The position numbers and the translations under genes were made by a program. DNA of 63,792 nt, counting the filler, from Octopus bimaculoides (Eukaryota), in NCBI RefSeq assembly GCF_001194135.2. It is 8 parts of 7 records of this genome, joined end to end, with 100 filler letters (N's around TTAATTAATTAA, not from the genome) between each part and the next. Parts side by side here need not be neighbours in the genome. Positions count along the whole stretch, not along the records: positions 47,319 to 58,622 come from NC_068981.1; 7 more parts are not named here. One strand, given 5' to 3'. The notes under the pieces were generated by a model. The model had not been told where the DNA came from, ran no database searches, and was given only the letters and a program-made list of their open reading frames with translations. Positions 50,106 to 58,537 of the stretch are shown piece by piece. The number at the start of each line of letters is the position of its first letter. Position 1 is the stretch's first letter.

Positions 50106-51500
50106 ATCACTTTTACTCGTAGTATATCTGAACTGATAAGTTTTTCAACAGCAATTGTTATGTGGTGTTTCGGTCGAGAAACAAAGGAAGCGAGAGAAAC
50201 GAAAGGGAACTATATAGATAGTGGGGTACGGAGAGCAAGATAGACACATTTATGTGAGTTTATAAATAAATCTGAATTTCCTCCAAATCTAGCCACTTTA
50301 TGTAAGCCGTAAGACGCTAAAAGACGTTACAATGCATTCGAATAAATATTCTCTGACAGTCTCTTAGAGTCACGAAAGTTATGTTCATAAATTTTTGGTA
50401 TTTGTAAAGTATTGAGGAATAAACTATACAATGGAATTTTAGTCACGGTCAGTTATAGACTCGAGATTTATGTTGTATATTATATACAAGAAATTTACTA
50501 AATCAAACATGTGTATCTGATAGCGTGAGTGGTGTGCATGCGTTGACCATTATTTAAGCCTCACATTCACACGTATATCTATCTATCTATCTATCTATCT
50601 ATCTATCTATCTATCTATCTATCTATCTATCTATCTATCTATCTGTCTGTCTGTCTATCTATCTATCTATCTATCTATCTATCTATCTATCTATCTATCA
50701 ATACCTAAAAATTTGTAGATTGGGGTTATGTGCTATGCACCCCTACCATAATTCTCGCTCAAATTGCATAAATTCACTGCAACACAATTTCTTTTCCTAA
50801 ACAGATCCTGCTCTTTCTAACATTATCCCAAAACAAATAAAATATAAAATGATCCCATCACATGCAAATGAAAGCTGGACCATATTTTTTGCAGCGGATA
50901 CCAGACAAGCTACCTCTATAGGGATACATATCAGTCAACAAAATCTACCAATTTACATGGGACATGATACACAAGTATCATGGTCAACACTTAGCCAAAA
51001 CATATGCTAGTAATCTAGTAATCCTATATGTATATACACGCACACATATCATACCGATATACATTTATATATGTTCGTGTGAATGTATCTGTATGGCAGT
51101 CTATGAGTATTTTTTTTTTAATAAAGGATACAATCCAAGCTTTTATTCTTCCGTCAGTCAATGCGTCTGATTTTCAAGCTCAAACTCTTAAAGCTTTCTG
51201 TGATATGAAAACAACGACTATGCTTCTTGCTGCATTTCCGTGTAAAGATTTAAAGAGTTCGCAACATTACTAAACATTATTTTTTGAAATGCGGTTACTC
51301 ATTTATATTCAAATGAGATTCTAGATAAATCAACAGTGTGATTAAAGACACTTTGAACGCAAAATTTCTATTAGCATCTAATACTAATCAACAGGTAAAT
51401 AAATGAACAACAGCATACATGCATACACACAATCACACACAAGTGCGCGCACGCACACACATCTATGTATCTATCCATCTATAGATAGATAGATAGAAAG

Positions 51501-51720
51501 GGTGGCGAGCTGGCAGAATCATTAGCACGCCGGGAGAAATGCCTAGCAGTAGTATTTCGTCTGCCGTTACATTCTGAGTTCAAATTCAACCGAGGTCGAG
51601 CTTTTACTCTTTCGGAATCGATTAAATAAGTGCCAGTTGCGCATTACGGTCGATATAATCGACTTAATCCCTTTATCCGTCCTTGTTTGTCCCCTGTATG
51701 ATTGGGGCCCCTTTGGACAA
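51501..51720 (+). mobile_element. SINE family A, full length
   Basis: GGTGGCGAGCTGGCAGAATCATTAGC head; present only in the left arm. Confidence 0.85.
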
Positions 51721-51813
51721 TATATATATATATATATATATATATATACAAAGTGAAAATGTTACTAAAAACGTCAATATAGCAACTAAAATCGTTAAAG
51801 CTTATTTACTTAA

Positions 51814-51828
51814 TGTAGATGTCTTCAT
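51814..51828 (-). pseudogene. IL-17-like pseudogene exon 1 (MKTST) with mutated donor
   Basis: Identical ATGAAGACATCTACA followed by TTAAGT instead of GTAAGT; TATA box reads CATATAAG; no exon 2 on this side. Confidence 0.75.
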
Positions 51829-52726
51829 TGTAATGTTCGAATACTTGGCAGCAAATGTAGAGTCTGCAGGTATATAACTATTATTTTTTACTTTGGCTGA
51901 ATTGTTTCTGCGCGATGTGATAGGCGTTCTTAATGATATTAACCTGTCCTGAGTTTGCTTATATGTAATATGAATAGAAAGCGGAATTATCACAGGTAAA
52001 GTATATTGTCATTCAAGGAATGTAGAAGGAAGGAAAATATTACGGAAATGCATTTTTCCGTCGAAGTTGCAAATCCGGCGATAATCTATCACATATTGGA
52101 AATAAGAACTTCTTGTGACCGACATAATTCTTGTAAAATGTGTTAAGAGGAACAGGACATTATAATGCTAACCTGTTAACCCACATAGCACGGGGGCGGT
52201 ATCTGTGGTCATGATTGACCCACAGGTACCGGAAGTTAAGAAAAAAACATTATACTTCTAAATCTTATTTTAATACCATTCTGCTTGTGTATGATTAGAC
52301 AAATTGTTTTCTTCTTTTTCACGTTCCAAATATTATATTTGAGTAAGGCGCGTTCATATGAGAAGCGTTGAATAAAGCGTATGTAATCTTCAAATAAAGG
52401 TTATATAATTTTCAAATTCATAAACTTTTTCAAAATAACCGGTGATAAATGATATAAAGAATATCTTTAGATTTGTATTTAGTTATTGATATATCTGAAT
52501 GCTTAAATTGTGTGCAGAGTTATGTCGTATTTGATCATTTTTGTTCTCTTGGGTATGATTCCCTTTCTTGCGCTAATGTTATTCTCCGGAACCTCTAGTC
52601 ATCGTAGATATTCCAGGTGAAATTAAGTTGACGGTGCAAAACCAGCAATATGGACATTTCTGACAATTAAAATATCCATCATTATCACATTATCAACCCG
52701 CGCTAAAATTTTGTTAAATACAAGCA

Positions 52727-55560: not shown

Positions 55561-55595
55561 TATATAAGCAACCTGGGGACTGGTTAATATCATTA
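55561..55595 (+). promoter_or_regulatory. IL-17-like core promoter (TATA + initiator)
   Basis: TATATAAG at 55561-55568 and TCATT at 55590-55594, about 30 bp apart, ~110 nt upstream of the ATG. Confidence 0.65.
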
Positions 55596-55700
55596 AGAAC
55601 GCCTATCACATCGAGAAGAGAACAATTCGGCCTAAGTTGAAAATAATAATAGTATACATCTACCGACTCTACATTTACTGCCAAGTAATCGAACATTACA

Positions 55701-55715
55701 ATGAAGACATCTACA
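55701..55715 (+). CDS. IL-17-like gene exon 1 (MKTST)
   Basis: ATG AAG ACA TCT ACA followed by GTAAGT. Phase 0 joins exon 2 to give the signal peptide MKTSTVLSSIAIFLFNIVFLVSSA; exon 2 has an in-frame TAG just upstream and needs an upstream start exon. Confidence 0.75.
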
Positions 55716-58009
55716 GTAAGTACAATGATATTATTTGCTATATTTATCTTTGTAATAATATTTTCATCCTACATATGAGTATATATANNNNNNNNNNNNN
55801 NNNNNNNNNNNNNNNNNNNNNNNNNNNNNNNNNNNNNNATATATATAAATATTCATGTATATGTATGTATGTATATGTATATATATACATACATACATAC
55901 ATACATACATACATATATATATATATATATATCAGCATGGCCGCAGCTCTAAGCTGAAACTTTAAAAAAAATATATATATATACATTCACTTATCTGTTG
56001 ATTAGTTTTCTATGTTAATGGGAAATTTATACTCAAAGTTTCGTTAATCACAGTTCTTATTTATCTAGAATCGGAGTTGAGTATAAATGAGTAACCGTCT
56101 ACTAAAAATAATCAATAATACACTTTTGAGCGCTGTCTCTCCTTACAAGGACATGCAACGCAAATATAATCATTGCTTTCATATCACAGAAAGTGTTAGA
56201 GATTGGCCTTGAAACCATATTCACCTTGACTGACCGACGTACAAAATACGTTCACTCATATGCTCATACATGAAAGTATATTGGTATGGTAAATGTGCGT
56301 GTATAGATATATAAGATAACTGGGATAACTTAGATATGACTCAGCTAAATATTGGCTCAGGCCGTATCTAATTTATTGTCACTACCGGATAAAATCGCCT
56401 AAGTCATTTTTAAGTAAAGATTTTGGATATAATGCCCCTTGTATATTGGGTTTTGTTGTTGACTAATATATATATATTCAGGTAGGATGTAGCTTATCTG
56501 GTATCCCTTGAAGAAATTTATAGAGCTTTGATTTGCATGTGACAGTATCTTTTTCTATTTGATTTGTTTTGGGATAATGTTAAATACAGCAAGACCTGTT
56601 GTCGAGAAGAAGTCATATTGCATTGAATTTATACACTGTAGAAGTGAACTGTGTTAGGGGCGCATGGCATATGGCCCCTGTACATATATATGTGTATGTG
56701 TGTGCGTGTGTGTGTATATGAGTGCGTGTGCGTGCGCGCTTGCATGTGATTTTGTATGTGCGTATAAGACATAACATAAATAATGGTCAATACGCGCTTA
56801 CCACTTACTCTGTCAGACACACATTGAATTTAAAATGTTTATTCAATAGTCAGTATCTAGTAAATAATACGCAACATAAATGTCAAGTTTATAATTGACT
56901 GTGACCACGATTTCGTTCCATTGTTTATCAGTCAAAATTTACAAATACCCCAAGTCTGAATATAAATTTTGTGACTATAAGAGACTATGTCAAGAACTAT
57001 GTCAAGAACTATGTCAAGAGACTAAATTATATTCTCCACATCCACAATCATTTATTAGGTAACTAACAGAGTATGGATTCTAAAACTATGTAGTCCACCG
57101 TGTTTAACAAAATTAAAACTTCCTTATATCGAGTGACGCTTTTTAACACGCGCCAGTTGTTTATTTATAAACTCACATATACGTGTCTATTGTTGCTGTT
57201 TGTACCCGATTATTTTATCTCTGTATATATATATATATATATATATATATATATATNNNNNNNNNNNNNNNNNNNNNNNNNNNNNNNNNNNNNNNNNNNN
57301 NNNNNNNNNNNNNNNNNNNNNNNNNNNNNNNNNNNNNNNNNNNNNNNNNNNNNNNNNNNNNNNNNNNNNNNNNNNNNNNNNNNNNNNNNNNNNNNNNNNN
57401 NNNNNNNNNNNNNNNNNNNNNNNNNNNNNNNNNNNNNNNNNNNNNNNNNNNNNNNNNNNNNNNNNNNNNNNNNNNNNNNNNNNNNNNNNNNNNNNNNNNN
57501 NNNNNNNNNNNNNNNNNNNNNNNNNNNNNNNNNNNNNNNNNNNNNNNNNNNNNNNNNNNNNNNNNNNNNNNNNNNNNNNNNNNATATATATATACGTATA
57601 TACTTTATTAAAAAAAATATTACTCTACCTCCGGTATTTGAGTACTATTTTTTCCACCTTGTTTTCTATTTACGGTCTAACCCTAGTATATAAGTATATA
57701 TTATATATGCATAATCCCCTTTCCGTTCTTTTACTTCCTTTTTACTTGACTGAAACTCCTTCTATCGACCACTGTTGAAAAACTTATCAATTGAGATATA
57801 TTACAAACAAAACTTTTTAGATTTTAGATTTCTTTTTTTTTTGGGGTCATATTTGTGTTTTCGCGTATCACTTTCGTATTTGTCCCTCATTCAACTTTCT
57901 GCAATAGAATTTCTTAAAGTTTTTCGTCATACATTGATATATGCGTCGAAAGCTGATAAATGTCTGAAATCCAAAGTAACCTTGACAAACATATATTTTT
58001 CTCTGATAG

Positions 58010-58537
58010 GTTCTCTCCAGTATTGCTATATTTCTATTCAACATCGTCTTTCTTGTATCATCGGCATCAATTCCAACCGAGTGTAAAATACCAACCAATC
58101 TGAAAGTTGAATACGAGAGTTTGACCAGTGCAGCCAGTGGCAATAACTTTTTTCTACCAGCTGAAATAGCTCCAGCCGCAAGTAAGCAGAACACCCTGAC
58201 AGACGGAGATAAAACTTGCCCAACGGCTTCTGTAGCCAGCAATATCATCCGTGAACGTTCAACCTGCCCTTGGTACCTGAACATTACCCATGATTCAACA
58301 GTTTTCCCTCCATCCCGCACCGAAGTTGTGTGTCGCTGTAAAGACTGTTTCGATTCTGACAGCAACCACGAATGTGTGATGGTATATACTCCAATGACTG
58401 TCCTTAAACGTAGCGATGAATGTGTTGATGGACTGTACGTGTATAAACCAAAAGTAATTCAAATAGCTACAGCTTGTGCGTGTGCACGAAAAGTCGAAAT
58501 ACAAAGTGATGGAAGCGACGATGAATACGCGTCGTAA
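58010..58537 (+). CDS. IL17: Interleukin-17-like cytokine exon 2 (cystine knot); full protein 180 aa
   Basis: TTTTCTCTGATAG acceptor; hydrophobic signal segment, then ERSTCPWYL (RSxxPW motif), CRCKDC and CACA cysteine pattern. Confidence 0.9.
   Translation, partial: VLSSIAIFLFNIVFLVSSASIPTECKIPTNLKVEYESLTSAASGNNFFLPAEIAPAASKQNTLTDGDKTCPTASVASNIIRERSTCPWYLNITHDSTVFPPSRTEVVCRCKDCFDSDSNHECVMVYTPMTVLKRSDECVDGLYVYKPKVIQIATACACARKVEIQSDGSDDEYAS

Follow-up and report, generated by a model that had tools for sequence, protein, structure and literature searches.

The IL-17-like locus and its live gene

The window, that is, the whole 63,792-nucleotide stretch analysed here, includes at positions 47,319 to 58,622 a part of the Octopus bimaculoides genome (source chromosome CM046601.1, about 25.58–25.60 Mb) belonging to a tandem IL-17-like gene cluster. 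Expansion of IL-17 genes as tandem arrays has been published for O. bimaculoides (PMC8353272), in agreement with the first-pass annotation of this DNA. In the following, R is the live gene of the right arm, L is the left-arm fragment, A and B are two upstream paralogues and E is a third 5′ fragment. A and B are found some 10 and 20 kb upstream of R, on the same strand and with the same two-exon structure, and E lies on the plus strand about 5 kb downstream of the R gene. Both gene strands are occupied elsewhere in the cluster, so mixed orientation is normal there. The features of R are as follows:

54576–55700, plus strand: live promoter and 5′-UTR, with collinearity to paralogue A starting at 54576 and to O. 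sinensis at 54575
55561–55568, plus strand: TATA box, TATATAAG
55590–55594, plus strand: Inr-like TCATT
55701–55715, plus strand: coding part of exon 1, with the ATG (MKTST)
55716–55721, plus strand: splice donor GTAAGT
55716–58009, plus strand: intron 1, about 2.3 kb, whose acceptor AG ends at 58009 and which contains the gaps 55788–55838 and 57257–57583
58010–58537, plus strand: coding part of exon 2, running from the remaining signal peptide through the IL-17 cystine-knot domain to the stop codon

The TATA box, initiator, first exon with its GTAAGT donor and intact second exon proposed for the right arm were thus all located, and transcription would start near 55592, given the Inr-like TCATT 31 bp past the TATA box. 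The spliced gene yields exactly the O. bimaculoides protein UniProt A0A0L8HUC3, which scores 53.3 bits against Pfam IL17 (cut-off 24); IL-17F and IL-17A are its nearest relatives with solved structures. The cluster representative A0A0L8HU95, encoded by paralogue B, is 92% identical to it, and the products of A and B both fall in this 90%-identity protein cluster. The TATA box, 5′-UTR, MKTST exon and GTAAGT donor are kept in A, B and O. sinensis, where an identical copy of the MKTST exon is found at L001:8081, and the core is 89.6–93.9% conserved among R, A, B and O. sinensis without indels. Judging from these sequences, R is in all likelihood functional, a two-exon gene encoding a secreted IL-17-like cytokine, with a predicted TATA promoter. 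It is already annotated, and there is nothing new in the gene itself.

The mirror-image arms

Self-BLAST aligned the left arm (50111–54139, minus strand) with the right arm (54745–57812, plus strand) as an inverted, collinear chain of eight blocks with 2073 aligned columns and a mean identity of 78.6%, which bears out the mirrored arms of the first-pass annotation. Among the 2687 non-transposon bases of the left arm, 2023 lie inside these blocks:

Block 1: left 54139–54070, right 54745–54814, 91.4%; this distal left-arm end (54070–54139, minus strand) reaches the gap
Block 2: left 52726–51731, right 54806–55787, 82.7%, E = 0
Block 3: left 51405–51141, right 55984–56246, 72.7%
Block 4: left 51073–50985, right 56265–56354
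Block 5: left 50969–50722, right 56428–56678
Block 6: left 50556–50358, right 56777–56986
Block 7: left 50270–50218, right 57160–57213
Block 8: left 50213–50111, right 57711–57812
54278–54575: unique centre, with (CA)n and (TA)n microsatellites

No homologue of the centre was found in any of the loci examined. An assembly fold-back was ruled out as the cause of the arms, because at 72–91% identity they are too diverged.

The left fragment

L retains the following parts of the gene:

51829–52726, minus strand: promoter and 5′-UTR homologue, 82.7–86% identical to the right arm
51965–51958, minus strand: TATA box, CATATAAG
51934 (position of the A), minus strand: Inr-like TCATT
51806–51828, minus strand: pseudo-exon 1, with ATG AAG ACA TCT ACA (MKTST) at 51828–51814 and donor TTAAGT
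50111–51499, minus strand: remnant of intron 1, in five inverted blocks 71–83% identical to right-arm 55984–57812

The MKTST exon, the altered TATA box and the TTAAGT donor were therefore present as described. The TATA box carries a T>C change, and the splice donor a GT>TT change at a G that R, A, B and O. sinensis all retain. The homology of L ends about 185–198 bp before the position of exon 2, close to the earlier estimate of 200 bp, and adjoins a reverse-transcriptase remnant. The intact left exon 2 that would contradict a dead left copy was sought by tblastn, and no second exon 2 was found in 47319–58622; in 51 kb there are only three copies (A, B and R), and L owns none. Lacking exon 2, L could not encode the cytokine; and since it retains promoter, exon 1 and intron, it was not retrotransposed.

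In the core from the TATA box to the donor, relative-rate tests counted 13–16 changes unique to L against 2–3 unique to R (p = 0.02–0.001), and substitutions and indels in the 5′-UTR are several times commoner in L than in R. Fourteen of the changes private to L in the core, those of the TATA box and donor among them, hit positions that do not vary in R, A, B and O. sinensis. Over the roughly 395 columns aligned upstream of the core, L and R are equal, with 18–21 changes each; constraint is relaxed only in the transcribed core of L. R and L have common derived substitutions, and a neighbour-joining tree sets both apart from A, B and O. sinensis. These results support the view that L, homologous to the promoter, exon 1 and intron but inverted, is non-functional. 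Birth and death of a paralogue, as had been proposed, is borne out in that a dead inverted homologue exists, but it would be an overstatement if L was born incomplete; that may be so, as there is no sign that L was ever complete and nothing points to a former exon 2.

Mobile elements and the flanking spacer

The left arm and its flank carry these elements:

52727–54070: non-autonomous TIR DNA transposon, left arm only, without coding capacity
52730–52929 and 54067–53855: terminal inverted repeats, about 200 bp
52719–52726 and 54071–54078: target-site duplication, TACAAGCA (9 bp if read as ATACAAGCA)
53437–53831, plus strand: intron-derived copy inside the transposon, captured or filler
51500–51720, plus strand: SINE-like repeat within the intron of the left arm, antisense with respect to the pseudogene
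47319–48070, plus strand: inter-gene spacer, being the 3′ flank of the tandem unit that comes before
48071–48620, plus strand: older retroelement tail fragment (O. sinensis matches 74–91.5%; three-frame translation)
48156–48170: first RefSeq coding exon, 'MECER', inside the retroelement tail, mapped via the P0039 N-terminus
48780–50096, plus strand: remnant of a non-LTR reverse transcriptase, degenerate, with both frameshifts and stops, cut at the left-arm junction
49110–49379: RefSeq coding exon 2, within the reverse-transcriptase remnant

The TIR insertion is indeed private to the left arm, which has the target-site duplication where the right arm has the uninterrupted empty site AAATACAAGCATGTCTG. 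As an additional observation, the intron-derived segment nested in the transposon is a third copy, absent from the first-pass annotation; it is 90% identical, in inverted orientation, to left-arm 50982–51323 (342 bp) and only 70–72% identical to the intron of R, A, B and O. sinensis. The SINE, by contrast, had been taken as private to the left arm and is not demonstrably so. It has four copies across the loci examined, one of which E carries at exactly this place in its intron (82.9% identical to that of L), and the right-arm counterpart of the site is the assembly gap 55788–55838; A and O. sinensis lack the SINE.

The spacer matches the paralogue A 3′ flank at 83.5–83.7% identity and the P0002 3′ flank of O. 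sinensis at 86% (both plus strand). The remnant matches Pfam RVT_1 at 49224–49676 (E = 7.5e-10), and 48618–49549 is collinear with L001 19757–20876 of O. sinensis, the 3′ flank of the orthologue, so the remnant predates the left-arm junction. Truncation of L by the remnant was rejected, as the same flank holds the remnant in O. sinensis.

Copy E and the proposed origin of the pair

E has an upstream tract of about 345 bp identical to L (52237–52602 matches it at 99.5–100%), which stops exactly at the contig end of E. Outside this tract the two differ by a 45-bp duplication, and their identity is about 94% upstream, 83% within the SINE and about 88% along the intron flank (the last by eye count on the alignment). 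By sequence comparison over the upstream region, SINE and intron flank, the TATA box and exon 1 of E falling inside an assembly gap, the closest relative of L is E, not R. An inverted duplication of the neighbouring gene, as first suggested, thus holds as to the homologous inverted arm and fails as to its nearest source. Because E shares SINE, flank and identical tract with L, at least two partial duplications are required.

We infer a segmental rearrangement inside the array, in which partial duplication and inversion would have given rise to at least two extra copies of the 5′ module, with L lying inverted upstream of R and E in direct orientation downstream of it. L would have been joined beside the older reverse-transcriptase remnant in the spacer. 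Gene conversion between L and E may have followed, unless the identical tract is an assembly effect. The decay of L shows in the TATA T>C and donor GT>TT changes, in the faster 5′-UTR change, and in the SINE and DNA transposon that it carries.

Alternative readings of the locus

The three assembly gaps (54140–54277, 55788–55838 and 57257–57583) are all non-coding, so the reading frame is unaffected, and order and orientation over the last two are backed by the gap-free left arm, by A and by the gap-free O. sinensis locus. The first separates the arms, and the head-to-head adjacency of L and R across this unread gap is putative; the chromosome-level assembly (v2) repeats the same contigs and gaps and therefore gives the join no independent support. 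The 6.8-kb contig 47319–54139 could then be mis-oriented or misplaced, with L a direct tandem fragment or at the position of E, and the identity of L and E ending at the contig end of E would fit mixing of paralogue reads. Such a scaffolding artefact is nevertheless unlikely, since in its present orientation 47319–49549 is collinear with upstream gene B and with the gene–flank–reverse transcriptase order of O. sinensis, so that turning the contig round would call for one more rearrangement, and L and E clearly differ outside the identical tract. Moreover, this ungapped contig holds the plus-oriented spacer together with the inverted L arm, so the inversion junction exists whatever the scaffolding.

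Use of a different first exon, which the first-pass annotation held would overturn its reading, is found by half: RefSeq XP_052830621.1 (270 aa) has other, transposon-derived 5′ exons and does not use the MKTST exon. Its coding exons (48156–48170, 49110–49379 and 58010–58537) map with canonical GT/AG sites, and the intron 49380–58009 would remove both arms, which would fold into a long pre-mRNA hairpin; the predicted arm–arm duplexes (−234 kcal/mol for a 164-nt block, −292 kcal/mol for a 217-nt block) are consistent with this. However, the model places 95 reverse-transcriptase residues ahead of the signal peptide, burying it, which would be implausible for a secreted cytokine; the RefSeq entry of paralogue A starts with an MKTSR exon, and the MKTST exon and promoter are conserved between species. 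In our judgement the MKTST model is the more plausible of the two, and there is little chance that the RefSeq one is right. Equally improbable is an active L promoter, giving a divergent non-coding RNA or acting as a bidirectional enhancer that regulates R. The upstream region of L evolves no faster than that of R, its conserved blocks are retained, as are TATAAG and the Inr-like TCATT, and one tract is identical to E; yet the TATA box is changed, the transcribed core is under relaxed constraint, and equal upstream rates also fit neutrality in both copies or gene conversion. The RNA complementary to the live 5′ region that had been envisaged does not follow, as a minus-strand L RNA would be about 86% identical to the R sense strand, so the geometry does not allow an antisense mechanism of this kind. 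Complementarity to the R 5′ region would require a plus-strand transcript that crosses L.

Comparison with known systems

L is very probably an ordinary partial-duplicate pseudogene within the known tandem IL-17 cluster, and the inverted pair is what a gene family expanding in tandem ordinarily leaves behind; it is no novel type of element. Like the non-processed partial-duplicate pseudogenes of birth-and-death families, L is without the main coding exon, disabled, hit by transposons and located in the array; it differs from them in being inverted to face the live gene, in having its sister E on the gene's other side and in showing no sign of former completeness. The transposon has the long terminal inverted repeats, precise 8- or 9-bp target-site duplication and non-coding interior of hAT-like or Mutator-like non-autonomous elements. 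It resembles Pack-MULE-type elements in carrying a piece of host intron, but that piece comes from only about 1.4–1.7 kb away, and gap-repair filler DNA would fit equally. As for R, it is a member of the O. bimaculoides IL-17-like cluster (A0A0L8HUC3, A0A0L8HU95 and XP_014769330.1) and does not differ from it, except that, compared with A0A0L8HUC3, RefSeq XP_052830621.1 gives it another, transposon-derived N-terminus.

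The intact gene of the right arm

The piece of the window between 47319 and 58622 contains an intact two-exon IL-17-like gene on its right side (R) and an inverted copy of the promoter, exon 1 and intron of such a gene on its left side (L), together with several transposon remnants; a third 5′ fragment (E) lies outside it, in locus L003. The features are as follows.

54745-57812, plus strand: right arm, R
55561-55568, plus strand: 5′ motif TATATAAG of R
55590-55594, plus strand: TCATT of R
55701-55715, plus strand: ATG-AAG-ACA-TCT-ACA, the five-codon exon 1 of R (MKTST), followed by the donor GTAAGT
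55788-55838: assembly gap, 72 bp into the R intron
58010-58537, plus strand: exon 2 of R
50111-54139, minus strand: left arm, L
51965-51958, minus strand: 5′ motif CATATAAG of L
51828-51814, minus strand: the same five codons in L, followed by TTAAGT
L003 ~25178-25677 and 26237-26710, plus strand: E, with a gap between its two parts

The 180-aa product of splicing exon 1 to exon 2 of R is identical to UniRef100_A0A0L8HUC3 ("Interleukin 17-like protein", Octopus bimaculoides); the R gene is already annotated. The product scores 53.3 bits on the Pfam profile PF06083 (IL17), for which the cut-off is 24 (E = 3.7e-14), and the match runs from residue 89 to 165 and over positions 1-81 of the 81 in the profile. 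All 24 PDB matches are IL-17F or IL-17A, and the best of them (5n92_F, E = 6e-4, R residues 77-164) is weak but specific, its alignment taking in the S-T-x-P-W motif and the C-terminal C-x-C. The 36 homologues of the product are all cephalopod IL-17-like proteins. By eye, the N-terminus consists of MKTST, then VLSSIAIFLFNIVFLVSSA and, after the apparent cleavage point, SIP, which looks like the n-, h- and c-regions of a signal peptide, and the hydrophobic stretch is kept in the paralogues. On these matches R is assigned to the Interleukin-17 family (PF06083), with a predicted cytokine activity.

The TATA box, the ~110-nt 5′UTR, the five-codon exon and the GTAAGT donor are kept without indels in the upstream paralogues A and B and in O. 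sinensis, and the core (the segment from TATA box to donor) is 89.6-93.9% identical among R, A, B and O. sinensis. At L001:8081 of the O. sinensis locus, the sequence of R recurs unchanged from the ATG through the five codons to the donor. This conservation argues for a real promoter and first exon of R. The current RefSeq model of the gene, XP_052830621.1 (270 aa), is composed of 48156-48170, 49110-49379 and exon 2 at 58010-58537; both upstream exons sit within retroelement debris, so that the signal peptide is preceded by 95 residues that match RVT_1, and the model is likely to be a chimeric prediction. Conservation across species favours the older UniProt model starting with MKTST over the RefSeq model, and the practical value of the finding is mainly for annotation. 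The RefSeq models of B and of the O. sinensis gene likewise use other, closer first exons. In O. sinensis the model starts at an MKKYYSLE exon (L001:10001), and the MKTST exon, TATA box and 5′UTR are intact at L001:7950-8102; there is also, at L001:6923-7955, a tandem duplication (83% identical) of ~515 bp of upstream promoter sequence. The 90%-identity protein cluster of A0A0L8HUC3 holds no transcript-derived (Logan) members.

The mirror-image arms and their assembly

The first-pass annotation had described the two arms as mirror images, and self-BLAST bears this out with eight collinear inverted blocks, from 50111 paired with 57812 to 54139 paired with 54745 (E-values 0 to 1e-12). The inverted chain comprises 2073 aligned columns with a mean identity of 78.6%, and it covers 75% of the non-transposon bases of L. 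Along the chain, the upstream and promoter part is the most similar (82.7-91% identity) and the intron the least (71-75%). All the motifs named earlier are found where they had been placed, and that description was essentially right, except that the privacy of the SINE to L is not supported (see below) and that the centre between the arms is unread sequence.

An assembly fold-back is ruled out as the source of the mirror image, for the arms are just 72-91% identical and carry many private indels. The piece aligns at 100% to CM046601.1 of assembly GCA_001194135.2, with the same four contigs and three gaps, so this chromosome-level assembly cannot serve as an independent check on the scaffold. 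Larger gaps flank the piece at both ends, and none of its own three gaps touches coding sequence. The gap at 55788-55838 is crossed by a single alignment of R 54576-56355 to A 8918-10633, and by another of R 55049-56635 to the gap-free O. sinensis sequence L001 7419-8956. At the gap 57257-57583, the flanking blocks are collinear in the gap-free L, A and O. sinensis, where they lie only 0-72 bp apart, so this gap probably represents an (AT)n tract that has expanded, or else its length is over-estimated. The third gap, 54140-54277, lies between the arms, and therefore the head-to-head adjacency rests on a scaffold join. The inversion junction itself exists regardless of this join, because one and the same ungapped contig contains a plus-oriented spacer (47319-49549), collinear with the 3′ flanks of A and of the O. 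sinensis orthologue P0002, and then the unit in minus orientation from ~50100 onward. The present orientation of the contig is the more parsimonious one, since it keeps the gene-flank-RT order of O. sinensis. In the gap-free O. sinensis locus there is no orthologous inverted arm within 6.5 kb upstream of the sole close orthologue; P0005 lies 80 kb away, and the P0010 locus of O. vulgaris belongs to a different subfamily.

Decay of the left arm and its boundary

L has the same five codons as R, and its donor carries TT in place of GT. No exon 2 for L or E was found by tblastn, even at E ≤ 10; with exon 2 as query, R is the single hit in the piece, and a search of 51 kb adds just A and B. In the core of 163 columns, L has 14 private changes at sites that are invariant in R, A, B and O. 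sinensis, and the private changes of these four number 1-7 each. In a Tajima-type relative-rate test of L against R, the L-unique to R-unique core changes are 13:3, 15:3 and 16:2 with O. sinensis, A and B as outgroups, respectively (p = 0.021, 0.0075 and 0.0013), while over ~395 columns upstream of the core the unique changes of L and R are equal, at 18-21 each. This excess in the core with parity upstream indicates that the transcribed 5′ module has lost constraint in L and kept it in R. Since the homology of L reaches into the promoter and intron, i.e., non-coding parts of the gene, retroposition is excluded. By its sequence L would accordingly be classed as a non-processed (duplicated) pseudogene or gene fragment.

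The homology of L stops at ~50097-50111, which is 185-198 bp short of the position of exon 2, and there it adjoins a reverse transcriptase (RT) remnant whose reading frame is cut mid-tail; by motif reading, the RT tail appears incomplete. The label of an RTE-clade element given earlier to 48.6-50.1 kb holds as far as an RT domain is present (RVT_1, E = 7.5e-10), and the element is reported here as a non-LTR-type RT remnant only. That an insertion of this element displaced exon 2 and truncated L is ruled out: downstream of O. sinensis P0002, the RT remnant and the left-hand spacer occur in this very order, so the remnant is older than the L junction. The remnant marks a breakpoint. In O. sinensis (L001:20506-21222), the orthologous remnant forms the middle of a fold-back palindrome that has no spacer (arms 87% identical, centre ~20871), the breakpoint of which differs from the L junction, and inverted rearrangements may be favoured at this spot. 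A separate reading frame at 48071-48460 on the plus strand, distinct from the RT remnant (48780-50096), looks like the C-terminal tail of an ORF from a retroelement (...VVIGALGSI..., ...QKIVLVETVHILHNIL) and is 74-91% conserved in the O. sinensis flank.

The TIR transposon

The upstream region of L contains a 1.34-kb element with terminal inverted repeats (TIR) at 52730-52929 and 54067-53855. Their outermost ~25 bp and an inner stretch of 95 bp match at 91-92% identity. It is flanked by a target-site duplication, TACAAGCA (8 bp, or 9 bp as ATACAAGCA), which occurs as a single copy in the intact site of R. The proposed TIR insertion in L is thus confirmed by inverted repeats, a clean TACAAGCA duplication and an empty site in R. 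The structure suggests a class II non-autonomous TIR transposon, either hAT-like or Mutator-like, as the ambiguity between 8 and 9 bp fits both. No other copies were found in ~160 kb of fetched loci.

Within the element, 53437-53831 is a 90% copy of the L intron segment 50982-51323, inverted and adjoining a (GATA)n run, which could be a captured fragment or gap-repair filler DNA; a short third transposon-end-like motif lies at 53262-53296. There is also a palindrome (53075-53264) with degenerate TTAGGG/CCCTAA telomere-like arms and a 60-bp core, which gives sub-threshold matches to Rfam miRNA models. RNA families and tRNAs in the piece were dismissed, as only sub-threshold miRNA-model matches to microsatellites and palindromes, and no tRNA, were found.

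Fragment E and the SINE

E is an orphan promoter/intron fragment on the plus strand, ~5 kb downstream of the R stop codon. It is identical to L over ~345 bp (window 52237-52602 against L003:25311-25677, with the exception of one T-run length difference) and ~94% identical further upstream. The identical tract stops exactly at the contig end of E, and its flanks are 83-94% identical; either recent gene conversion or assembly read mixing between the paralogues would explain it. On the far side of its gap, E has the SINE of L too, inserted at the same point of the intron and 82.9% identical to the L copy, and the microsatellite and intron sequence flanking the SINE is ~88% identical between the two (eye count). 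The SINE is absent in A and O. sinensis, and R and B have assembly gaps at exactly that place, so the claim that it is private to L is not supported. The SINE (51500-51720) has four copies of 74-100% identity on both strands in the fetched loci. It had been called tRNA-derived; its short, interspersed, multi-copy nature agrees with a SINE, but no tRNA-related head was found by ARAGORN or as an Rfam tRNA match at E ≤ 0.1, and A and B box-like motifs are seen by eye only.

The unit homology of E ends ~480 bp past its gap, with no exon 2 within the following 3.7 kb and no gene annotated there, so E, like L, is an orphan fragment. This calls for two or more partial duplications, one of them with inversion. 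In the neighbour-joining tree of the core, R and L group together with common derived states, and R, L and, presumably, E form a subgroup; E, not R, is the closest relative of L. As far as seen, L and E are two unannotated 5′ fragments flanking the R gene.

A possible RNA from the left arm

The interpretation offered in the first-pass annotation is partly right. It had been supposed that the dead promoter of L might drive an RNA complementary to the live gene. This is contradicted by the geometry: the L promoter points leftward, so its RNA would be the reverse complement of the plus strand and hence sense-like, ~86% identical to the sense R 5′UTR, exon 1 and intron. Complementarity to R would arise only from a plus-strand transcript reading through L, and the 8.6-kb intron of the RefSeq model would be such a read-through transcript. 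The arms are predicted to pair strongly, their two best blocks giving -234 and -292 kcal/mol, and such pairing in a plus-strand transcript of the RefSeq intron is speculative. It is very improbable that, in an animal with exceptionally active ADAR editing, a plus-strand transcript starting in the upstream transposon remnants, as in the RefSeq model, and so carrying both arms would form an imperfect dsRNA of at least 1 kb around the R promoter and exon 1, serving as a substrate for editing or small RNAs that tunes IL-17 expression.

The IL-17 cluster and comparison with known arrays

The paralogues A (XP_014769330.1) and B (A0A0L8HU95 / XP_052830616.1) lie ~20 and ~10 kb upstream of R on the same strand and have the same two-exon design; elsewhere in the cluster, genes are in mixed orientation. 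Exon 2 of R (58010-58537) is 97.5% identical in DNA to that of A (L002:12143-12670) and 96.0% to that of B (L004:10504-11031), while the paralogue promoters are 82-84% and the introns ~66-75% identical; between R and O. sinensis, exon 2 is 89% and the promoter 82% identical. The excess identity of exon 2 points to gene conversion or strong selection acting on the coding exon alone. Taken together, the identical tract of L and E and the 96-97.5% identity of exon 2 against ~82-84% for the promoters are possible signs of sequence exchange between copies of the cluster. A further pseudogene fragment of the cluster may lie at L006:20647-20861 (minus strand), where a sequence weakly (70%) similar to exon 2 is located ~9 kb from a different IL-17 gene.

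It has been reported that the IL-17 expansion of O. bimaculoides comprises 31 genes (genome paper) or 36 (later survey) in tandem arrangement (PMC8353272). The finding as a whole is ordinary: a truncated, inverted and decaying partial duplicate such as L is the expected remains in tandem arrays that evolve by birth and death, and the details of L and E illustrate how the octopus IL-17 expansion gains and sheds copies, leaving the known picture of tandem birth and death unchanged.
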